Assembly (NCBI GenBank): GCA_964057225.1
Contig: OZ059896.1
Location: 14,198,001 to 14,262,000, forward strand
From: Auanema rhodensis
Taxonomy: Eukaryota; Animalia; Nematoda
DNA length: 64,000 bases
Direction of reading: 5' to 3'
Position numbers and translations under genes: made by a program. Below, piece by piece: positions 1 to 47,595 of the stretch. Positions within the stretch are counted from its first letter, which is position 1. Each line of letters begins with the position of its first letter. The notes under the pieces were generated by a model. It did no database searches, had not been told where the DNA came from, and saw nothing but the letters and a program-made list of their open reading frames with translations.

Positions 1-2229
1 AAATGAAAATTTGCTAAAATTTTAGTTTGTGTACTATGATCAAACTATGTTAATATTATCTTATTTCTATAAATATATGTATAAAATCATTTAAAGTTTT
101 TTTTCTTATTGAATATATAATAAAATTATATTTTATTTAAAATTATTAATTTATATTTATTCAATCAAAATGTAAATGAAATACAAATTTTGTTAAAATC
201 ATTCTACAGCTTATGCTTATGATTGTTAAGGCTTCAACTAAGTTTTAGCTTTAATCCTAACATTAACATCTGAAACTTGTACCTATATCAAATATTTTTT
301 ATTTGATTTCTCCAATAGAATTTTGATTTCTTCAGGGAAAAGTTGGAATAGTTGTTTTATTTTTAAACAATTTTATTTGGTTTTAAGTTATAAATACATT
401 GATTTGCACATTTTTTGTAGACGACCATTGTTGCAAAAAAACATGAAAAAGATAAATGTGAAGAAAATGGTTGAAAATACATATTTATAAAGGAAGAAAA
501 TTATTTTTAATTGTAAAATGACAAAAATAAGAAAATATAAAGGTTGAATTGGAGTAGAAGACTAAATGGCTAAAATGACTTAAAAGTCAGATGAAAGCTA
601 TGATGACGATACACTATAAGCAGAGTCAGAACAGGCATGGAATTTCAATTGGCGTCTACTTACCATAGTAAGAAAATATATACCGATATCGTTAAGAGAG
701 AAAGAATAAGAAATATAGAGAAAAATTAAATATAAGAAATTACGAGAGAGGGAAAGAGAGAAGGAGAGAGAGAACAAACAAAGCATCCGTTGTCAGTTCT
801 AGCTGGTTAGCTGGAATAAGCTGGATGAGAAGTAAGAAAGTTCTATTTCAAAAACAGCTTCCGGATAATTTCAATACGGCAAAGAGAGAAGGGATCTTTT
901 ATGAATTTAAATTTAAATTATTAATTATTAAAATGCTTTCTAATATTTCATATCCTGTTAATTCTTATTAGGAGTTTTCCGAATAAAATTAGCAAAGTCG
1001 AAATTTTTCTAAGATTCCACATGAATAGTCCTCAAGCTTCATCATTGCCAACCTATTCCACTTTTATCAATGTTTCCTTTTATTAATTTATTTAATAATT
1101 GTCTTAAGAAAACAATGTAACTAAGTAACTGAAAAAGTAAAGTAGACGTGTTGTTCATCAACAAATATTAGAAACATCTGTCTATATTTGACCAAAAATG
1201 AATGAAAATATTAATTATATTTTTAAATTTGACTATGATATCATATCAAGACTTTTCATTTATTTATTGATATTTTTCAACATTTCTCAGAATTTAAAAA
1301 AAAAAAACAAAAAAAGGTAAATGATTTAATATAGTTTTGAAAATTTCAATTCATTTTTTGTGTGTGTGTGTTACCATAATATTTGATCGAAATTAGTCCA
1401 ATTTTCACATTTTTTTTCTTGGAAAAAAGCAAAATTTGGCGATAAATAGTTGGATGCATGTGGAATATTGTCGCTGAAAATATCCCACATATATGATATT
1501 TATTTTCTTTTATTCTTTTCGTTTTCTAAGATATAGCTTTGCCTGAAGCTAAGACGTTAAGCTTCTAACGGAAGACTGGGCATTGAGGCATTAAACTAGT
1601 AATGTTAAGCTTTATCTCTCTTTCTTTCTCTGTATATTGCTCTCAATGCTCTAAATATTAGTTTCAATTTTCATATATAAGTATGAATCTATAGAATAGA
1701 GATGAATATACTATGCATTATACTTGCAAACCATTATCGTTTGCTCAAGTCAACTTGACACAAATCATTTTGATTATCGGGTTTTCAGGATATTTCTTGA
1801 GAGTTCATGTATTTTCAGCATAGTTTGCAAACCACAATCGGTGCACTTCTTCAAACATCTTTTAAATTGAAAAAAATCCTTTTTCATCATTTTGGGGGGC
1901 AAATATCTTTAAAATACGCGTCGTATTTGTTTCTCATAATTATGTAAGCTTAAAAGGCAAGTTTAAAACTTGGTATAAGGCTCATAAAGAAAAAAAAATT
2001 TCTAGTTTATCTGAAATCGATAATCGTATCGATTTGTCTATAATAATTTACAAGTATACTATGTATATTTGAAGAGTGCATTTACGACGTTTTGCCTTTA
2101 AAATGCTTTAGAATTTTAAAATTTAAACTTCAACCTGACTAAAATTATAAATAATACTTTATATAATCAAGATTCAACAAGAGAAAATACAATATAAAAG
2201 TAAAAAAAAGAATAATTTTGGTTTGAATA

Positions 2230-3617
2230 TCACTTCATACTCGAACCACCAACAGTTGACCGAGCAGCAGTTTCGATTTGGGAGAGAGCTTGTTCGATCT
2301 GAACAAAAAGAAATTAAAGTTCAACGTAATCTAAATCATTTTCTGTATAACCTGATAAGCTGAAATTGTTTGATCAGATGTACGAGTACGTTCACGTCCC
2401 TGGGTAACAGTGCTATAGATGGATCGTCCCCATCCTTTTTTAGAAGTTTTGCGTCCAGCTTGGAGAAGAGCCTTATCACGTTTGTGTGGGAAACTATTAC
2501 GATTACTAGATAAATAGCACATGCTAACCTATAATATGATATAAACAATAATAGAATATAAACAAAAGTTCAAATACCAATGAGCAGATCATCATACCAA
2601 CAGTGTAACCATAGACGGCAAATGCCGAGAATAAGGAGCTGAAAACTTAAGTCTTTTTGAAGTTTTCCGACAAGGTAGTGACAAGATTGAAATTCTTTCA
2701 CAACTAACTTATGTGGACAGGTAACCTGTATTCCACGTTCAGTAATAAGTAAATCTCCAGCATCCATTCCCCGACAATTGGCATGAATTGTAAAAAAAAA
2801 TAAAAATAAGAAGAAAATTCTAATTCAAACTTATCTGATAGGATCTCTAGTTGAGGGGAAATATGCTGTACATACAAATCTTTGTTCAGCTAAGAATGAT
2901 TCTTCATCATCATTAAAGTATTTCGTACTAACATTACATGTACTAACTCTGCCAGTACTGTAAAATATCAGAAAAAAACGTTTTTTTTTTCAATAAAAAC
3001 ATAAAAAATACTTGAAATTGAAACGAAGGTATGTATTGAGAGGTAATCCAGGAAATGTTAAATCAATATAACGCTTTGGTAAACAGTATGCTACTTCAAA
3101 TGGAACTAGAATACCATATAGGTAAAAATATATTTATATAAAACATAATAATTTGAATATTATTTTAATGTTCAACAATATTGAAACTAAGCTTTAACTA
3201 ACCAGCTCCACATGTTCGTGTTGAATGAAACAAACATGTATCTGTTACCAGGTACATACCATCAAGAATGCTCTCTTCTTTACAAAAGGCTTAAAAATAT
3301 GAATTATTAATAATATTATTTTTATTATGTGAATAAAAAAAATATTTAAAATGAGTACTTGGTGCACTGGAATGTCCTATAGCTGGCAGTTGAACAGATA
3401 GAGCATCTGTTTTGATAATGGTCAAAACTAAAAATTCAACCAGTAATAACAACATTTTATGTTTAAATGAAACTTTATTGCAACTTTGTTTAAAACGTGA
3501 AATATGACGTCACGTGTCTAACAATTTAAATATGAAATTCAGCCAATTAATTAGAATACGTGAAAATGCAAATTGCCACTATGAACACTTAGTACTTGAA
3601 ATTATGTTTAAGATCAT
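2230..3617 (-). CDS. Unknown 260-aa type I single-pass membrane protein with an 8-Cys ectodomain (9 exons, one AT-AC intron)
   Basis: Exons 3596-3617, 3359-3427, 3203-3289, 3012-3105, 2835-2957, 2709-2789, 2578-2638, 2352-2528 and 2230-2298 join in phase. Translation: MILNIISILTIIKTDALSVQLPAIGHSSAPTFCKEESILDGMYLVTDTCLFHSTRTCGAVPFEVAYCLPKRY...RDPIRIHANCRGMDAG...VTCPHN-SLFSAFAVYGYTVGMMICSLVSMCYL(TM)-SSNRNSFPHKRDK...GGSSMK*. All introns are GT-AG except 2790-2834. The first exon is the least certain. No family recognised. Confidence 0.8.
2790..2834 (-). other. Non-canonical AT-AC intron, 45 nt
   Basis: The minus strand reads ...ATCAG|ATAAGTTTGAATTAG...TTTTTTTTTAC|AATTCATGCC. Removing it gives in-frame ...DPI-R-IHANCRG; retaining it gives an immediate TAA. 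Confidence 0.72.
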
Positions 3618-5774
3618 TTTTAGACATATAAAACTATTTTCGGCTGTACTTTAAGTGAGTTTTCATATTGTTTTTTCTTTTTATTTTAAATTTATACCTA
3701 TAAGTATTTATAAATTTGAATATTCTTAAATTTTTATATTTTGAAGCTTTTATTTCAATGTAACCTTTGAATTTTTGATTTATACTTTGCTTCTTTTTAT
3801 GAATGTTCTATCTCTTTCTTTATTTGATTTATTTGATTATAGTTAAAATCATCAACAACACTCTGTATCACCTTTTCCGCTTAACCAGCCTCTCTTCTAT
3901 TCTTCTTTCCCTCCTTTCTCAATCATATACATATGTAGTTTCGTCCCTCATCTGTATTCTTCTATGTTTTAGCTAGTTTTACTTTCTAATACTTAGTTCT
4001 GATTATGTTTCATAGACATTATTCTATATCAGATTATAAGTTTAAAATGTATGTTCATGCATATATATATATATAGAATATAAACAACGTTAATGTTTTT
4101 GTCTACCGTAACATATATTTTGAACATTTTGATTGAAATTTGTTTGAATACAGAAGAATAGTGTTCTCCGTCCGTTGTTGTATCTACTAAGACTTAAATT
4201 AAACATACAAACTGTTAAGGAATTTCTCTTTTTCTTTCTCTCTTTATCTGGCCTTGTTATTCAAAATTTATAGTAATGATTTCCCTCTCTCTCTCTCTCT
4301 CTTTATCTCTCTTTCTTTTTATTTTGTTCCCTTGTTAGTTTCTTTAGCTTCATAACAATTTTTTTCATTTTGTTCTATCTGATCGAATGAATTTTTCGTC
4401 TCAACATCGAAACAATATTGTAGCATTGAGCAAATTCGTGGTAGTTTGTCTCAAAACGTTTATAATCCTCTCTGTTCAAAAGAATTAAAATGTCTAATGC
4501 TGAACTTTTGACAAGATAAATGACCAATATCAATCCAAAAGCTTTTCGCATTTTTAGACCAAAAAAATCGATTATAATATATGAATATACTATATATCTA
4601 TATATATATTTCTTTCAACTTTTGGTTTCTGAAGTTCAAGAAGTTCAAATCTGCTAATACCAAGTTTATGATGCCATTTACTGTTTGACCATTAAAACAA
4701 TAGAAAATGTTTCAGTATCTCTCGGAAAAATATTTCATTATGGGTGGCAAAAACTCATTTGAAACAGGTTTTCATTTTTTTGCTCTTCACTGACAATTAA
4801 TGAAATCTTCTCAATTATATTCCATTTTATTCGTTCAGAATGTTTCCATTCTATCAGTTTTATATTTTATTTCTTTATAAATTGAAATAAAATATTTATT
4901 TTATTATTATAAGATTCATAATTTCATATTTGATGTATTCTTATTCTTATTAATTTTTTTTTATTTATATATATATAAAAGCTATTTTTTTGTAATTTAA
5001 TTTATAATACATATATTATAAATGAAAAATGTTCCTTCACTTTTAATATTTTCATTTTTTTTGTGTTTCCAATGTTTCATCTTTTGAACTTATTCTATGA
5101 AAAGCTTTGTGACAACTATGCTGCTGGAGCTATTCATCTCCTCCGATTCAATGTTATAACCTTTTCAAAGCAGCTTATATAATGATTTTTATAAATTATC
5201 TTTCTTAACTATAATATTATAAAACAAGTTTTGTTTGATTTTTCAATATCAAATATTTTGATATACAAACAACTCAAATATTTTATTACCAAAAAATCAA
5301 ATTAATAACAGGCTGGTTAATATGAATAGAACATTGACCTATTTTATCTATTTTTACTTTTTGAAAATTGTTTCCTCTTTTTTTATAAATTTTATATGTA
5401 TAAATAAAAAGATATCTATAGTAAGAAGAGATCATGATGAGAGATATGACATATAGATAGTTATAATATAACATAACCGACAATATATGAACGAGATATT
5501 AATTCATTTGTTATAACCGGTGGCCACAAATACTTTTGTGAACTTTTTTTTATTTTTTTTTATATTTTGATTATCTCTTTTCTATCTATTAATTGTCGCT
5601 TTTTCCTTTCAATATTTTATCCGACCTATAGTTAGAAATTCATTGCTGCTGCTGATTTTGTCCGAGACAGAGAAAGTTCAGCCTGTTTCAGTTCTTCCTT
5701 CCTCTTTCAGATTATAAACCTTCATCTCTTTTCCTCTATCTATTCGGCTCCTTATTTCTTTTTGATCTGACTAC

Positions 5775-5777
<3 letters not shown>

Positions 5778-5830
<53 letters not shown>
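5778..5830 (+). repeat. (CT)n microsatellite
   Basis: A perfect run of ~26 units. Confidence 0.95.
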
Positions 5831-5835
<5 letters not shown>

Positions 5836-6423
5836 ACCCTCGTAGTATTTTCACTTTTCATGTCCCTTCTGATATATGTATATATACATGTATGTATATG
5901 TATATGTTCGTTTTTGATATCAAAACTATGTTTTGACATCTGTCCTATACTTCATTTAGCTCAATTTCCACTTAATCAACCTTTTCTCGTTAACATCATA
6001 CCATTCTTGTTTGATCGACACGCGAATGAGGTTGTTGATTTTAATCAAAGGGAGGGAAAAGAAGAGAGAGAGAAAGAGAGAGAGAGAAAGAGAGAAAGAG
6101 AGAAAGAGAGAAAGAGAGAAAGAGAGAGTAATGTTTTTTTTCTTCGTGATTACACTTCTAATAGTTATAAGATAAGACCGTTTTTCTTTTGATCACGATC
6201 CTTCTTGCAAATCCTTTTGTTTTCATTTCTTATCCTTGATTTTCGAATTTTTTGTGTTCAAATTTGACAGTTGTAACTAGATCATTGTTTACTTTCATTT
6301 TCTATGGGTTTTTTTAATCTTTTTTTTTTGGTCATTTGTTTCTCAATTTCAGGAAAAGTATCATTACTTTGTATTTTTTGGTTTCTTCGCACCAAGCCAT
6401 ATCAAATTGGTTCCAGTATCAGA

Positions 6424-23355: not shown

Positions 23356-24508
23356 TTCATTTCTCTTTTACCAACGACGATATCTGTTACTGAAATTTGA
23401 TTTAGTATTCAAGTAATATCAAAAGTAAACTGAAATTTCTTTATTGCTTCCATGTTCTTTCATCTTTTAACTTCATTTTCCAATGAGAAGATAAGTTGTT
23501 CAGAACATGATCGTTCAGATGTTAATACATCACATGAAGTACAAACTCATACATCAGCTATTTTCGGTTACTTTCCTTTCACAATAAACCAATTCATTTG
23601 AATCCTCAGGCTCTTTTTTGACTTTTCTAAGATTAAATTGAAAAATGAGAACAACAACGATGAATTACAAGTTCACCAGAACAAAACATTGTTCTTCACC
23701 TCTTTTTTTCTTTTTTTTTAAATAAAAATCTATTTTATAATTCTTAAAAATATTGTTATAGATAAATCAATACCAATATAACTATTTTTTCATTAAAAAG
23801 TACATTTTTTCAGCTTTTTTATGACAATTTGTATCATTTTTCTGAGATGAAGTTGTTACTAAAATCAAAATACCGTGAAAATTTTTAATGAGAAATATAG
23901 ACAGAAGCTTGTTAATTTGATAAGAATAGCCACATAGTTTTTTTTTTTCTGATTCAATTCAATAACAGGCGGGTATTGAATTCTCAAAACTACTTTTGAT
24001 TTCCAAACTTTGCAATTGACTTAGTCCTCAGAGAGAAAGTTTTGCTTGTATTTCTATTTGAAGTACATCAACAAGAGCTTGATAGACAGATCAGAAATGA
24101 GAAACAACTAGATTATGAGAAGAAAAAGAACAAAAATGTAAAATTTTGTTTGAAAAAGCACAACATGAGACAAGATCAAAGAAAAATTTTTTTTTGTCAA
24201 ATCTTATTGTTGAAATATCTTTTACTTTTATTCTTTTTTTTTATATATAAATATACAGATACATATATTTTTTTCTTTTAGATATTTGTGGGTGGTTGAA
24301 GCTTTTAAGTGTATGCTACCATGAACATATTCTCTCTCTCTCTCTCTTTATCTTTCTTTGAAAATCTGAACATAGAAGGTTCACGTTTACATCTATCTAC
24401 CTCGACTACTTTTTTTTACTTCATCTTCATTTGAAACAAAATAATATTTTTATATTCTGAATATCTTAAAACTTTTTTCTTTCCTGTATTACATACAGAT
24501 TTCACACA

Positions 24509-34900: not shown

Positions 34901-37622
34901 TTTTTTGAATTATAAAATTATTTTTAAAAATAATTATATTTATTTAATATTATTTAAGGATGATCATTATGTTTCAAGTTCAACCAATCAAAAGTAAGTA
35001 TTTAAAGTTTACGTGTAAATTAGCATAAAATTGACGTGACATTCATACAACCTTATTTTCAATTTTTTTTAACTGAAAATTGGTTGCTTTTAAACTATAT
35101 ACATATATAGTTATTATCATTATTATTATTAGTAATATAATATTATTTTCAGTGTTCATTATGCTTCTACAACAATCTCTCCAACTGCACCATCAAATGG
35201 TATTTTCTGTTTTATCAATTTTTTTTCAAAAGAAATTATGTTTGCAGGAGGATATATGATACCAAATAAGAAATACGTTGACGATGAACATATTTATGAA
35301 GATATTGAAGAGATTATTTCAGTTAAAAGTACTTTGTTATCAGTTAATATTTCAAATTTTATTATATTTAAGCTATTCCATTAACATATTCTGAGCCTAT
35401 CATACAAGAAGCTGATTCAACAACTAATAAAATAAATACTGATAGTAATCTTAGTTATAGTAAGTATTATATTTATAATATTATATATACAATTATATTT
35501 CAGCTTATCAGAAAAACATCTATGAAGATGTGTATGAATCTGTTGACACTGGTAAGGCTGCCGGAATAACAACTGAAACAATTCGTAATATGAGCCGTAG
35601 TAACCAATGGGATGAGGATATGACTATCAAGGTATAATACTTTACTTTCCCATAAGCTTTATATCTTAATCAATTATAATTCTATTAATCTATTCATAAC
35701 TCTCTTACAGACTCCTCCCACTCCAGGCTGGATAATTGGTGGCAATGTCACAGGTGAGAAGACATGCACACCGACTTATCAACCTTCTATCTTTCGACCT
35801 TCTACTTTTCCATTTTTATCCTCAGCATCATGCTCATCATGCTCTGATTTCTCATTTCCACCTACACCAGATGAATATAAGAAATCATCATTAACAACAT
35901 CATATTTTGATCAATATATTATCAAAACATTATTATATAAATTATTGTTTAGTCAAAATATGATGTCATCAGCATATCGATTTCTAATTATATTCATAAT
36001 AATCTCTTTAATTCCATCATTATTCCGTTTGTTACGATTGTTCAAACGATATATCTTCAATCGTTCAAGTTAATAATCAAATTTAACAGAATCAAAAAGA
36101 TTTCTTTTCAAATTTCAATTTTTCATTTGTATATTCTGGTAATATCCACCAGTTCAGCACTTGCACTTCACCCTTGATTATCTGTAAATTTAAGCTGAAC
36201 TTTAATTCTTTTTTTATTAAAATTAAGGTTACAATATTCTAAAAATATTTAAATATTTGCAATGGTTATTGTAAAATTATATATTTTCTTTTTGAAAAAT
36301 AGTTATTATTTTAGTACAAGCTGAACCAATCATCTTATCAAAAAGCAAAGAATTAGAAGAACAAGGTATTATATATTTAAATATTTATATTTTATTAATT
36401 ATATTCAAATTAAGTTTTCAAAGTTGTTGATGAAAATGGTAATCGTCATACCATTGAGCAAGTTATCATTGAAAATCCAACTGGAAAATCAGAAGAAGTT
36501 GAAGATAAATTCCATCGCGGTTATGTTGAAGAAAAACGAAGACTTTTTGAAGCGTAAGTTTAAAAAAATTAAAAAATTAACTAATTATTAATTTATTTAA
36601 AGAAATGCTGAAAGACATAGATTAGCTCAAGAAGTTTTACATCGTAATTCGCATAAAGCAGCTGAAGTTTCTTCCACTACACCTATACATAAGGAAGTTG
36701 AAGAAAAGGTTCATAAAAATTTTTCTATGAAAATGAATTGTATTATTCAGGTTGTACAACCTGTTCAAGCATCATCAATTCCAAAGCCTACTGTTCGTTC
36801 TGTTCATCAATTAGCTAAGTAAACTAAATAATATTTCTTTCTTTCATATAATTTATAAATTATAGGAATTTTGAAGCTTTATCTAAACACGATAATGCTC
36901 GTGCTGAATCTTCTGATTATCGCGCAATTGTTTATGAAGAAACAAAACAAGCTAATCTTGCTGATAGTAAGAGGTAATTCAAAATATAATTATTACAATA
37001 ATTATATTTTCATATATTTAGTGAGGCTGTTGTTGAATCTCCTACTACATCTATCGGACATGGAGTAGATGTAACTCCAACGTATCGGAGGATTCACCGT
37101 ACTGTTAATAGCTATGTGTAAGTAATTTTGAAATTTTGCAAAAACTATTTCACATAGTTGATTATACAAACTATGTGGAAATGTGTGCTTCTTATGCATG
37201 TACCATTTCCCTTTTTCCTATTTTTACCTGTTTCTTATCCATTATTGGTAATCAACCCGAGAGTCTTCACTACTCAAGCATAGCGGAATCAATAGCTTCA
37301 TCGTTTATTCTAGTCATATTCCTTCTGATGCTCTTTTAGCTGGCAGATCGGTTCACTATCTGATTCATCATGCCTACCCGATGTTGTTAGTCCCCATATA
37401 AAATCCCTTGGTCATTCATCATTAGATAAGTGAGTCCTTGGTACCCTTCAAAAGTCCTTTTCAAAGCCTTTCCATTATGGGATTTACCTTATAATATAAT
37501 TATGCACATGGTTAACAAGTTTTACTTTTAATATCACATTCCAGCGGTTCTACTGCTTCTTCAGTTACTGGATCTGATGATGCTGCTTCTTCTTCTGCTC
37601 ATCTAGGAACAACGAATCAACA
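31997..37622 (+). CDS. Large low-complexity/coiled-coil protein region (~1,290 aa, ~18 exons); positional candidate for an IFO-1-like intermediate filament organiser
   Basis: The ATG at 31997 (MLRFAPPKPKRR) follows a TTTCTAG acceptor. A 2.35 kb exon (32169-34520) contains the 751-aa ORF with an E/Q/R-rich helical rod. A chain of phase-consistent small exons then runs to 37545-37622, which ends in a phase-2 GTTAGT donor with no stop. The IFO-1 identity is inferred from position, size and composition only. Confidence 0.85.
33747..34030 (+). repeat. Coding tandem repeat, 57 bp (19 aa) unit, ~5 copies
   Basis: AEALRIREEQALLQQRQ(Q/R)(E/D) is repeated; units start 57 nt apart (33747, 33804, 33861, 33918, 33975). 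Confidence 0.95.
35711..36073 (+). CDS. Alternative terminal exon extension encoding a C-terminal transmembrane (tail-anchor) segment
   Basis: Reading through the GTGAG donor at 35754 keeps the frame open to TAA 36071-36073, ending ...SAYRFLIIFIIISLIPSLFRLLRLFKRYIFNRSS*. Confidence 0.6.
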   Translation, partial: TPPTPGWIIGGNVTGEKTCTPTYQPSIFRPSTFPFLSSASCSSCSDFSFPPTPDEYKKSSLTTSYFDQYIIKTLLYKLLFSQNMMSSAYRFLIIFIIISLIPSLFRLLRLFKRYIFNRSS

Positions 37623-40600: not shown

Positions 40601-42050
40601 TGAAAATATTTTAAATATTATGAATAGAAACAGGTTTTTCTTGAAAAAATTCAAAAAAATTCATTTTCTTTATTTTATTTGAAAGAAGAAAATATTTGTT
40701 GTATATAGACACAAAGTCGATGATGATAGAAGTCTTCTCAGTTAAGTTTATCTAATTACTATTCTTGTAGCTTCACAACCTCTAGATGGATAGAGGGAGA
40801 GAAAGAAAAGAAAAAAGATTCTTCTAAACACAACCAAAGACTTACAACTTAACTTCAACTCTACTACAACTTCTTTCTTATCCTACTTGTACCTTTAAAA
40901 CTCCTCTGGCTCCTCCTCCCTCCCCCCCCTCTCTCTCTGTTTCCCTCTCTCACTCTCTTTCTTTCTTTTGACAATAAATCGGTCTTTTATGAAATTGTAA
41001 AGATAAGGAACAAATTAATTTGAATATATCTTTCCATTTTGTGTTTTCTTTTATATGTTGGTCCCATTTTCATTTCTAATATTCTGATGCATATTGAAGA
41101 GACGATGGGAATGAAGCACGCTATTGGTATTTGGCCAGTAACATGCTTCATTCATTGTTTTCAAATTATTTTTTTTTTCTAAAAAAAACTAAATAGACAT
41201 ATAATAAACTATTTGGTTTTTTTTCTTTAAATTATATATTATTATTATTATTTCACGTCAAATTATTTAACGTGAATTATGTAAAATACTTATTTCTCAA
41301 TCTCATTTTCACTTCTTTATGCCTCTAGAGCGGTTGTGCTAGATGTGTCTGCTTCATCTCATTGGATCATGGTCTTAAAGTTTTCACCATCTATTTCATA
41401 ACACTGAGTGCTAGAAATTTGTGTGTTGGAAAAAAATGTATTTTATGAATGAAATACATGTTCATAATGCTCTTAGTTCTCCTCTTTCCATTTACTCTAC
41501 CTATAGCTTGTCTATTGATTGTAAGTTGACAAGCTTGAAGCCGTGGGGGATGACGAGAGAAAGGAAAATAGCATATAGGCGCCTTTTTCTTTCTACCACC
41601 AACTGAATATATCCTGGAAACAGATGCTTGAAACATCCTGAAACTCATACCTTTAATTTTTTTTATTTCAAACTATTGAATTAGCTTTAACAGGTTTCTT
41701 ATTTCATATTATTTTCTCAATTGATCTCACTTTTTATAAAATTTCAAATAAGAACTGATAGAAACAACCTTATTTGGCACAATCCATCAGTTCATATTTA
41801 CATTCTTCATAGCCTATCAAGTTTATATTATTTACCTCTTACTCTCCCTTTCTCTCTCTCTATGTCTTTTTATTTATTTTCATTTTTCTCTATCTCTTTT
41901 CTCTTCCTTTTTGGGCAATTTTATTCTTTTTTTTTTCATATTTTCTTCCAATTTCCCTACTTACTTCTCTACGTTTTTTCACAATTTTACTCATACCACT
42001 TAGCACAATGTTGTATACATCTTTGTAATCTCACCTTAATTTGTCTATCA

Positions 42051-42051
42051 A

Positions 42052-42090
<39 letters not shown>

Positions 42091-42139
42091 ATATCTCTCT
42101 CTCTTTCTCTCTCTCTCTATATATCTCTCTCTCTCTCTA

Positions 42140-42170
<31 letters not shown>

Positions 42171-42198
42171 ATATCTCTCTCTCTCTTTCTCTCTCTCT
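42051..42198 (+). repeat. Compound (CT)n/(AT) microsatellite
   Basis: About 150 nt of interrupted CT repeats. Confidence 0.9.
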
Positions 42199-43798
42199 TT
42201 CTTATTTTGAACTTTTCAATTTAAAAGTTAAATAACTATTCAATAGATGTTATTTTATTTTACATTATCAGATAGTTTATAGCTCATACATCAAAACTAT
42301 TATATGGATAAAATGTATTTACTTCATTTCTCTCTCTCTCTCTTTTCCCGCTTTTTTAATTTTTCTACTCACGTTCTTTTCCTTTTCTCTCTTTCTTACT
42401 TTCCCATATTCTTTCTATTTTTCTCTTAATATCACTCTATTTCCCTCTATCTCTCTATCTATTTCTCTCCATTTTTTCATGAATTGATTGAAATTGAACA
42501 GAATTATCGAAGTATTTCCATCTCTCTCTATATATACATATACATACATATATAGAGACACATGTATGTACATGCATACATATACTCTCACACTTTGTCT
42601 AACTAGTCAACGTGTTCTCGTTATACCTTCGAACCTAAATACACAAAGTTTCCAATAAAAATTAAAAAAAGCTTTTCTTCAATCTCAGATTTTCAACATT
42701 TTCTCTCCAAAATGTTCTTCCTATTCCTTCTCTTACTTTTCATCAATTTTATTATCAAACCAAAATTCTCTCTCGCTTCTTTTCTTTCTAATCTCCAATA
42801 CATCCAAAGTCGATTTTCCAAATTTGGGTGTGGCAGCCCGGATATCCGTACGCTTTTCGCGTATATTCAATGAGTTAAGAAAGAATCTAAACACAACACT
42901 CATTTTTCTCAATACTTTTTTTATTTTTCAAATGAGAACATACATAGACGTTCACCCTTTCCTACAACCTCCCCCCCCCCATTCTTCCTCTCTTTCTCTC
43001 CCTACTTCTCTTCTAACCTCCTTATCTAGTTCATGCACCCCCTCCCCTCCATGAGTCAGTAATTCCAAGAGCTCATTGCTCAATTGCTCTCTCTCAAGCA
43101 TTCTTATTGCTTTTTCAAGTATTTTCATAAAATAAATGTCTTATTTCTAGATTTATTTTTAATTATAAGAATAAGATAAAATAAGAAAATGAAAATGAAT
43201 ATAACTAACTATAACCATATAGTTTCATTCAAATATTTGTTTGTTAATATATTTATTTATTATTTTTATTTATTTTTCTCATATTTTTCTCAAACAGTTG
43301 TGAATTTAAGCACCTCTCACAAACAACAACTGCCCTTTCGTTTCATTTTTTGCTTCTTCTTCTTCTTCTTCAGGCTCTAAAATCTTGTTGTGTTCTCTCT
43401 AATTTTCTCAGTAATTTTAACAGAAATTCACTTTATTCTCAATTTTTCTTATATTTATATTCACTATTTTATTGATTTTTTTTATAAAATTGATTTAAAT
43501 TTTACATTTTTTTTTGAAAAAAAATATGAATTTTTGATTTTATATATTCATATTTGGCAAATATGCTGAAAAGCTTCATATTTATTTGAAACAGAACGAT
43601 AGTTATCTCATTCCTTCATCATAATTTTCTCCATTTCTTCATCTCTCCCTCTCTTAGTTTATCGCTCTTCTTCTTCTTAAGCTCTCTAATGCTAATTCTC
43701 TCATATTGTCTTTCTTGTTCAATATGAGTTCGTTCTCATCTTATTTTCAGATCAAAGACACTATGAAGCCAATTTCATCTATGAATTACTTCCCCCCA

Positions 43799-43845
<47 letters not shown>

Positions 43846-45513
43846 ATTTCTCTTCTTCTCAATTCTGAAAATATTTCCAGCAATATCTATTCTCTCTATT
43901 TATATAATAGTTTTGTATTCAAGGAATATACATTCCTCTACATGTTCTTCAAATCCATGTAACATCCAGTCATTTTAATTTTTTTTTTCTGCTCAACACG
44001 AGACGTTGTTCCATTGTTGTTGAACTTCCTTTTTGTCACCTTTAGCGTTTTTTCCGTTCAATTTGCATCGTTCTTTCACCTTTATAACCTCCTCGTTCTC
44101 TCATCTAGAGCATGTTCTGATAATCAATGATCAGCACTTACTTAGCTTTTCTTCAGATATCACACCTGATTCTCTTTTTATTCAAAAATTCTCTGCACTT
44201 TTTCAGTTTAACACATGTTCTATATATTTAGTTTTTCTTAAAATTGATTATAATTTATATTATTTTCAAAATGAAAAATTTAAAAATATGTTTTTTCAAT
44301 CTTATAATCTGAGAAATTCTTTATTAATCTTTATATTACTTTTTCTATACATAGTAATGTATAGATTACATCTCAATTCCCCATCTTTTCAAAGATTTCA
44401 CCCTTCATTCTATTTTTTTGGTTTAAATTCTTCTTATCATCACTACAAGCTTATCATCTTGTAGCTTGTCGTCTTTTCACTTCTTTTCTTTTGAGCTCTC
44501 TCTATCTTTCTCTCTCCCTCTCTCTACCTTTAGAAACCGCAAACCAAAATTGAAATCATCTATCAATAACCAACTATTTCTTACATTTTTGAACTTTATT
44601 GTGTTTTATTTCAAATTTGCTCTCTTTATCTTCTAGAATCCCTTTAATCTTTTTTTCAATTTTTATGTTATCTTATTCTTTCTTTACTTTATATAGTATT
44701 TACTATATATATATAACTCTATTTCTAAACTATTCTTCAAAGCTCCAAGCAACATAATTTTGTTTTTTTTTTTCATTCAAATCAACTGTTTTCATAAGTT
44801 TTTTCTGTTGATTGTACTTGCGGATACAACTTGTAACTTGTATTGTGTGTATGTTTGTGCTTCGTTTGTCACATTCATGCATTATAAACCATCTACTCGT
44901 TCTCCCTCTTGGTACTCCCCCCTCCATCCCTCCCTCTCTCTCTCTTTTCTCTCTATAAATTTTTTTCTCGTTATCTCTAAGCTTCCACCATCCTTTTGTT
45001 CCATCGTTTTTTGAACATTTTTTTCCGTTCATTTTCTCAGGTTCATATGTTCCCTTCCCCCCTCCCCCACTTGTTGTATACACAGAAAAGAGATTTATTG
45101 AAATTTCAATCAAGAGATTTTTTATTTTTTCCAATGTTTTACTAACGAATATGGAATGAAAAGGTGGAGCAATAAAGAACAATAGAATTAAAGAAAAAAC
45201 GAATTTATAAAGAAATACGAAGATGGACTAAACAAATCCATTGGACATCTCCTTACACCACAAGCTTCAGGATCTACTTCATCTCCAGCCCATCCTACCC
45301 CTCTCAGCTGTCAACATCATCTACTAAACTTTACATGTATATTCTATCCGTTATATATCTTCTTTGAGCTTTTCCTTCTCATCTGCTTTCCTCCTGCAAT
45401 GATGTGTTGTATGTATGTGTATGTATGTGTGTCATCATCTTCATCATCAGAACTCATGTGTCCACCCATTTAGCTTTTTCTTGTCTTCTCTCTCTCTCTC
45501 TTTCTCTTTCTTA

Positions 45514-45545
<32 letters not shown>

Positions 45546-47595
45546 TTCATATTATCCGTTTTTTGTCCTTTTCCATACTCTTTTATCGAACTTTTTTATG
45601 AATTTTCCGCTCTTCTATATGCTTATCGATAGCTGTTTCTTTTCATTTTCTCAGTTAGAATCTGACGGCAATCACGTCTTTCTACTCTTGCTATCTCTCA
45701 CTCTCGTTCTCTGATTCTACTTTCTGATCAATCAATATGTGCTTTCTTCTCTTTGGATCACTACAACATAGCAGAACAACAGGCAACATTTCTCGTTTAA
45801 GCTGCATATCATCTTAATATTCCTTACGAAACCTTATGATTTGCTTTTTATGTTTCTGATTGGTTTAAAAGTTTTTTTTTCTGCGTAAAGTTTGTGATGA
45901 ACAAAGAAAATTATTTATATATATCTCAAGAATGTTATCTATTTGTTATAATTAACTAAAAATATTTTATTTATATTATTATTTGGAGATTGAACTAAAC
46001 GTACCATTTCATTGTATGTCTACTAAACTTGCGTTAAAGAACTTAAAATGAACGATAGAAGAAACGATGAATGAGATATATGAAGAGAAAAAGGTAAAGG
46101 GAGAGAAAGCGAGAGAGAGAGAGAATGAAAACAAATCATAGAGAGAGAAGGCCCCTTTCGCCTTTTGTTTACTCTGTCTTCGTCGCCTCTGTTCCGCGTT
46201 TGTCCTCCTCAACCCCCTCTCTCTCTTCTCTCTTTCTCTCTTTCTCTCTTCCTCTCTCATTCCTCGTTGAGTCTTTCTTCCTCCTTTCACCTACTCTCTC
46301 TTTTAATTCATGTAAAGAACTTACGTTAATTCTCCTTCATATTTTCTCAATGAGATATTGCGATACCTTCTGAATCCTTGCGCAACACACTCCATTCAGG
46401 ACCAATTACCTTTATATTTTTTTCTGTTTCTACTTTCTTTTTCCTGATGCTCGACAGCATTCGCTTCTCTTTCTTTGTCTCCTCCTTCTTCTTCAAACTG
46501 TTTGTCCTCGTTGAACTCATTCTTCAGTTGCCATTTCACTGTTATAGGAGAAGTTATTTGTTCTTTTTTAATTTCAACCCAGCGATTCTTTAAAGAAAAA
46601 AAAACAAAAAAATATGATAAATTGTCCATTTTCCTATATTTTGCTCATCCATTTTATATGAAATTCCCAAACTAAATTTCAGTTACTCCTTCAATTTGCT
46701 CTCGAAAGAAATCATATTTTTCTTCATTTTTATGTTTATTCCTTGATGCATCTGTCAATTTTTTGATATTATGAGGCTAAAAAGCGGACAAGCAGATCGT
46801 TTTCCTTAGTCAAGTCACAAATTGTTTACTAGCTATAAACACGAGAGTTTTTTTCAATTCTGCTTCTCTGTTTCTTTTAGTTTTTCCTTTTTTTTTCAAA
46901 GTTTTCTTCATCCTTTTTATTTATTCCTCTGACTGTGCCCCGCTCTTCAAACTTAATACGAATTAAATTCTTAAATATTATATTTTACTATATATTATAT
47001 TCAAAAATGTTTTTTATACTATTTTTCTTGTTATTTTTGATGAATCTTACTGAAATACATTCTATTCTTAATCAGCAAGTTATAGATTTATTCGCTTTTC
47101 CGCATACTTTACAACTAAAAATAGTTTTGAATGGCTATTACTAGTAGCCAGTACCAGAAAATAGTGAAGAGAGAGAGAGAGAGTGGTGCTTATACTTATC
47201 TCTCTAGCTTCTTCTACATCTTCTCGTTTACTGAATAACCAAATTAAACATATATCCACCACACATGGGAACAGTTTGTTCTTCTGTTTTTCTTCGTTTA
47301 CTTACTTATATGTATAAATGAATATACATATACATATATAAACAGATAAATATTTTTTATTCCAAAAAAAAAAAAAATTCAACCGATCTATAAGAGTCGT
47401 ACACTTAAAATGAATATTTCACGTAAATTTCACCCATCTTTCCTCTTCATATGCTAATTAGTATAAACTTAGCAATTACTTATATCATCATCTTCATCAT
47501 CATCAACTTTTAATCGTTTTCTTTCATTTTCTTGCAAATATTCTGAAATATCTTCATATTTTCATTCGAGATTTCAATTTTCATTATCATTTCAG

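Follow-up and report, generated by a model that had tools for sequence, protein, structure and literature searches.

The locus lies on the minus strand of the 64-kb window (the whole stretch of Auanema rhodensis DNA that was analysed) and comprises a gene of eight exons and seven introns, delineated with the help of two cDNA-like contigs, X11 and X13. An exon-wise check, in which the phase alone was passed on from one exon to the next, gives a spliced frame of 262 codons that starts with an ATG (3455), stays open through all joints and closes with a TGA (2233-2231). Six of the seven introns are of the GT..AG type, and the sole non-canonical one, intron 4, has AT at its start and AC at its end.

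Gene structure and predicted product

All features are given on the minus strand in the direction of transcription, with a slash marking the exon-intron border. Exon 1 (3455..3359) opens with the ATG at 3455 and encodes 32 codons with a hydrophobic, signal-peptide-like start, as judged from contig pieces covering 3359-3454 together with the translation. It is followed by intron 1 (3358..3290; 69 nt, GT..AG, CAA/GTACTC ... TTTTAAG), the acceptor of which (TTTTAAG, 3290-3296) is of the AAG type. Exon 2 (3289..3203; 87 nt) and exon 3 (3105..3012; 94 nt), both placed by contigs and translation, are separated by intron 2 (3202..3106; 97 nt, GT..AG), which has a weak ATTCTAG acceptor. Intron 3 (3011..2958; 54 nt, GT..AG) leads to exon 4 (2957..2835; 123 nt), which ends in ...ATC AG (phase 2), and intron 4 (2834..2790; 45 nt, AT..AC, CAG/ATAAGTTTGA...T9-AC/AATT) separates this from exon 5 (2789..2709; 81 nt), which starts A ATT CAT... 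The remainder of the gene consists of intron 5 (2708..2639; 70 nt, GT..AG, TAA/GTTAGT ... TTTTCAG), exon 6 (2638..2578; contig cut at +2) with the first part of a predicted membrane-spanning segment, intron 6 (2577..2529; 49 nt, GT..AG), exon 7 (2528..2352), in which the membrane segment is completed and a basic tail follows, intron 7 (2351..2299; 53 nt, GT..AG), and exon 8 (2298..2220), which contains the stop codon (TGA, 2233..2231) and in which the contigs end 11 nt past the stop. A first model of exons 5-7, with intron 5 read through and the last exon ending at 2334, was overturned by the cDNA-like contigs.

By inspection, the product is predicted to be a small membrane protein of type I, in which a signal peptide is followed by a cysteine-bearing outer part, a single membrane segment (exons 6-7) and a basic tail. 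The two contigs end 1-2 bases from the ATG (at 3454 and 3453) and 11-12 bases past the stop (2220 and 2221), carry no attached spliced-leader or poly(A) letters, and have a TATGAA approximately 19 nt before the 3' end. Such short contig ends reflect either extremely short untranslated ends or contig breaks at graph branches.

The window has a G+C content of 29%, and the introns of this gene range from 45 to 97 nt and its exons from 61 to 177 nt, with nematode-like acceptors. These values are consistent with those published for Auanema rhodensis, namely 32.2% G+C, a median intron of 47 nt and a mean exon of 123 nt (PMC6469403). Elsewhere in the window, (GA)n/(CT)n microsatellites occur at 5739-6190, 41700-42220, 43650-43980 and 45400-45710, among others, and produce, on both strands, long open frames of SLSLSL or RERERE that are artificial.

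Searches for relatives of the gene returned no usable match. A Pfam profile scan of the eight exons taken singly found nothing, a weak match to DUF7420 being rejected as lying in the wrong frame, and phmmer found no match to exon 4 (40 aa) among 1.84 billion representative proteins, so that no protein in this library carries exon 4. Likewise, a word search with the open reading frame at 2334-2522, which covers exon 7, yielded no candidate, an Atlas feature search with exon 4 gave no usable match, and no paralogue of the gene was found in the 64-kb window. On this basis the gene may be young and lineage-restricted. The initial annotation had also proposed that gene predictors would mis-model the gene, and the blank phmmer result for exon 4 fits this idea without proving it: predictors limited to GT/GC..AG introns will break the gene, and such breakage may be the cause of exon 4's absence from the large protein library.

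Removal of intron 4 from mature RNA

A run search with positions 2330-3460 identified nine DNA runs in which 0.89 or more of the sampled words are present, as well as four small runs from a separate study containing 0.48, which is the share expected from exons alone. Two of the four small runs and two DNA runs were aligned to 2000-3800. The small runs are designated RNA by the tool's guess only, and they supply evidence in the form of assembled contigs, the two samples used belonging to a single study; we take them to be spliced RNA because contigs lacking all seven introns can only arise in that way. Each of the two small runs provided one cDNA-like contig (X11, 798 nt; X13, 796 nt), every aligned base of which is identical to the window, and none of the introns is covered by contigs of these runs. 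Both contigs omit seven segments, six of which are bounded by CT..AC on the plus strand, corresponding to GT..AG for the gene, and the seventh of which is exactly 45 nt long (2788->2834, with a 1-nt ambiguity).

This seventh segment had been singled out in the initial annotation, from the letters alone, as a 45-nt AT-rich stretch between two coding exons that starts with AT and ends with AC, excision of which restores the frame and retention of which gives AGA TAA. The window sequence and translation bear out each of these points, with the gene on the minus strand, so that 2834 is the first and 2790 the last base of the intron. When intron 4 is excised the reading frame is preserved, and when it is retained AGA TAA follows at once, the first stop lying 41 codons past 2956, with exon 4 providing 40 whole codons. 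The join between 2835 and 2789 that had been predicted is present in both X11 and X13, and the canonical alternative that had been named as a competing outcome, a GTATGT donor at 2875 spliced to a CAG acceptor near 2726, is not used in either contig. Exact removal of intron 4 from mature RNA at these borders was thus found in two contigs from two samples, and the AT-AC intron is confirmed to be real and spliced out of RNA. Slow splicing, which the initial annotation suggested could act as a switch to a truncated or NMD product, would leave no trace in assembled contigs, as these do not reveal retained forms.

A brute-force test of all nearby cut pairs indicated that the RNA is reproduced only by AT..AC (2834..2790) or, one base over, by TA..CA (2833..2789), the two cuts being equally compatible with the RNA because an A stands on both sides. 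A TA..CA intron would represent an otherwise unknown border type and is without precedent or consensus donor, whereas the AT..AC cut has both, given a donor that is perfect except at +1 and the experiments on A..C pairs (PMC1557818). We therefore assign the shifted cut a very small chance and use the AT..AC borders throughout. It is extremely improbable that the joint itself was produced by reverse-transcriptase template switching or by an artefact of contig assembly. Non-canonical "introns" in cDNA data often arise in such ways, but here the sequence shared at the joint amounts to just 1 nt, both samples yielded this joint and no other assembled form, and the omitted segment is exactly intron-like in size and composition, with the frame preserved on removal and an immediate stop if it is retained.

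Genomic sequence at the intron ends

The letters at the two ends of intron 4 were examined in independent DNA. One DNA contig (X9, record 7), from a sample not flagged as the source of the assembly, spans 2587-2924 with 0 differences, a second (X6) spans 2000-3800, also with 0 differences, and all sampled words of 2330-3460 are present in six DNA runs from three studies with three organism labels. Both contigs accordingly carry A and C at the intron ends, not G and G, as the initial annotation had read them, and its opinion that two independent sequencing errors were unlikely can be put more strongly: a pair of errors at 2834 and 2790 is excluded, since X9, X6 and the six DNA runs agree with the genomic letters.

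A related explanation is that the RNA came from a strain with a GT..AG allele and that the AT..AC allele of the assembled strain is a dead one. The spliced contigs hold no intron letters, and the intron ends of the RNA source are consequently not read directly, which leaves room for such a difference. Against this, the RNA contigs agree with the window at each of their 798 exon bases, every sampled word of the gene occurs in the six DNA runs, which span three studies and three organism labels, X9 and X6 carry the same intron, and no variant letters are listed. It is therefore very unlikely that RNA and DNA derive from strains with different alleles.

Splice signals of intron 4

Read on the minus strand, the sequence across intron 4 is ...CCTATCAG/ATAAGTTTGA...TTTTTTTTTAC/AATTCATG..., with exon 4 ending in ...CCTATCAG and exon 5 starting with AATTCATG. 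The intron is 87% A+T, starts with ATAAGTTTGA and ends with nine T's followed by AC; its size and composition are exactly intron-like. The donor, CAG/ATAAGT, matches the major-type consensus CAG/GTAAGT at 8/9 positions, the highest score among the seven donors of the gene, the remaining six of which match at 5-7 of nine; these scores are plain consensus matches and do not involve the SpliceRack weight matrix. With the nematode extension, the donor ATAAGTTT has 0 mismatches to the major-type consensus except at +1. At the other end, the acceptor TTTTTAC departs from TTTTCAG in just two places, at -3, where one pyrimidine replaces another, and at the last base, and T occupies 17 of the 20 bases preceding the AC. 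The description of the flanks as normal apart from the terminal G's consequently holds, with the pyrimidine swap at -3 as an accompanying difference. The strong donor and T-run of intron 4 parallel the stronger flanking consensus of GC-AG introns (PMC1557818).

The same acceptor motif is present elsewhere in the gene. Intron 2, which has a GT donor, contains an internal TTTTTAC (3128..3122) that is unused and lies 16 nt before the weak ATTCTAG that is used. TTTTTAC is thus used with an AT donor in intron 4 and unused with a GT donor in intron 2, a small internal control that points in the same direction as the first/last-base rule, according to which A..C can stand for G..G; use of the motif in intron 2 would also break the frame.

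Two further shapes of the form AG/ATRAGT...TTTNAC are found in the 64-kb window. The first, at 23491-23582, was rejected for having no compatible frames. The second, at 37426-37525, reads AG/ATAAGT...TTTTAC and lies inside a large coiled-coil/PH gene, where the frames are compatible; the sequence is accounted for by a canonical intron of the form GTGAGT..CAG (37430-37543), which is the likelier model, and this shape was also set aside.

Assignment to the major or the U12 type

U2-type AT-AC introns were defined by sequence criteria in the census of Sheth et al. (2006), that is, by a donor of the major type except at +1 and by the absence of U12 signals (PMC1557818). Intron 4 starts with AT and ends with AC, the TA..CA shift by one base fitting the RNA equally, and its donor is of the major type except at +1. 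The U12-type donor ATATCCTT was not found in intron 4, where ATAAGTTT stands instead with 3/8 positions mismatched, nor was a TCCTTAAC-like branch site located approximately 10-20 nt from the 3' end in the absence of a pyrimidine tract. Within intron 4, the 8-mer that comes closest to a branch site is TTCTTATT, which is mismatched at 3 positions and stops 15 nt short of the 3' end. The earlier statement that both U12 signals are missing thus stands, with three mismatches in each case. A scan of the 64-kb window with Rfam produced no match, a result that says nothing on the rest of the genome.

According to published surveys, the minor spliceosome was lost in nematodes other than Trichinella (PMC2846911, PMC10639083), and the animal group considered here should therefore have the major spliceosome only, with no minor machinery to confuse the assignment. 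It has also been reported that some nematodes may retain diverged minor-like components, with minor-like introns and possible traces of U6atac (PMC11347168). We accordingly considered whether a residual or diverged minor (U12-like) spliceosome persisting in this rhabditid nematode serves intron 4, or whether a U12-type AT-AC intron has recently left it behind as a relic. Termini of the AT..AC kind are characteristic of one U12 subclass, the reported minor-like introns and possible U6atac traces provide some background for such an activity, which would fit the nematode "snapshot" of minor-intron conversion claimed in that study (PMC11347168), and the 8-mer TTCTTATT ends at a distance of 15 nt from the 3' end. 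The donor and the branch-like 8-mer, however, each depart from the U12 signals as described above, the intron has a long U-run before its 3' end, as in major-type nematode introns, and the gene has no detectable relatives, hence nothing points to an ancient intron. We leave a very small chance to this explanation.

The assignment of intron 4 to the major type is supported by every sequence criterion. From these criteria, together with the surveys that report the minor spliceosome as lost (PMC2846911, PMC10639083), we infer that it is spliced by the major spliceosome, and the snRNPs acting on it would correspondingly be of the major type. Overall, we estimate a probability of about 85% that intron 4 is a natural U2-type (type II) AT-AC intron in an expressed eight-exon gene of 262 codons.

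Proposed mechanism of splicing

Under the U2-type assignment, the pre-mRNA would be recognised as containing an ordinary short nematode intron. As the donor CAG/AUAAGU is otherwise perfect, its pairing with U1 and U6 would tolerate the A at +1, and U2AF would be bound by the 3' U-run in the way it is by UUUUCAG. During the second catalytic step, the two terminal bases of the intron would contact each other as an A..C pair, a known substitute for G..G; rescue of an A at the first intron base by a C at the last has been observed in yeast and human experiments (cited in PMC1557818, its references 52-54). The strong flanking signals would presumably compensate for the odd ends.

Comparison with known AT-AC introns

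U2-type AT-AC introns are rare in the organisms surveyed to date. SpliceRack contains 15 from human, six from mouse and three from fly, with none from C. elegans or Arabidopsis, and the count for C. elegans is 0 of 94,072 introns (PMC1557818). Our examination of the literature found no description of a U2-type AT-AC intron for rhabditid-group nematodes. Intron 4 represents a clean natural example of the first/last-base rule (A..C for G..G) in vivo, and the worm should be useful in finding out which positions of a splice site are truly required by the major spliceosome.

Among known systems, terminal dinucleotides alone are shared with U12-type AT-AC introns, from which intron 4 differs in lacking the ATATCCTT donor and the TCCTTAAC branch site and in having a long U-run. 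The "other AT-AC introns" reported from organisms that lack U12 snRNAs, among them ten from Monosiga brevicollis (Bartschat and Samuelsson, PMC2846911, Table 2), share with intron 4 the AT..AC ends without U12 signals and a host lineage without U12 snRNAs. The Monosiga cases are EST-based counts without analysis of each intron, whereas intron 4 is documented with its gene, its frame and confirmation in DNA. With U2-type AT-AC introns such as those of human SCN4A/SCN5A (PMC1557818), intron 4 shares the AT..AC ends, a donor of the major type except at +1, the absence of a U12 donor and branch site, and exact removal from mRNA. It differs from the human, mouse and fly representatives in occurring in a rhabditid-type nematode, in its length of 45 nt, in its nematode-style U-run and in belonging to a gene without detectable relatives, and its dependence on major snRNAs is a predicted one. 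The AT-AC kind is thus already known, and the new element is the host group in which it occurs.
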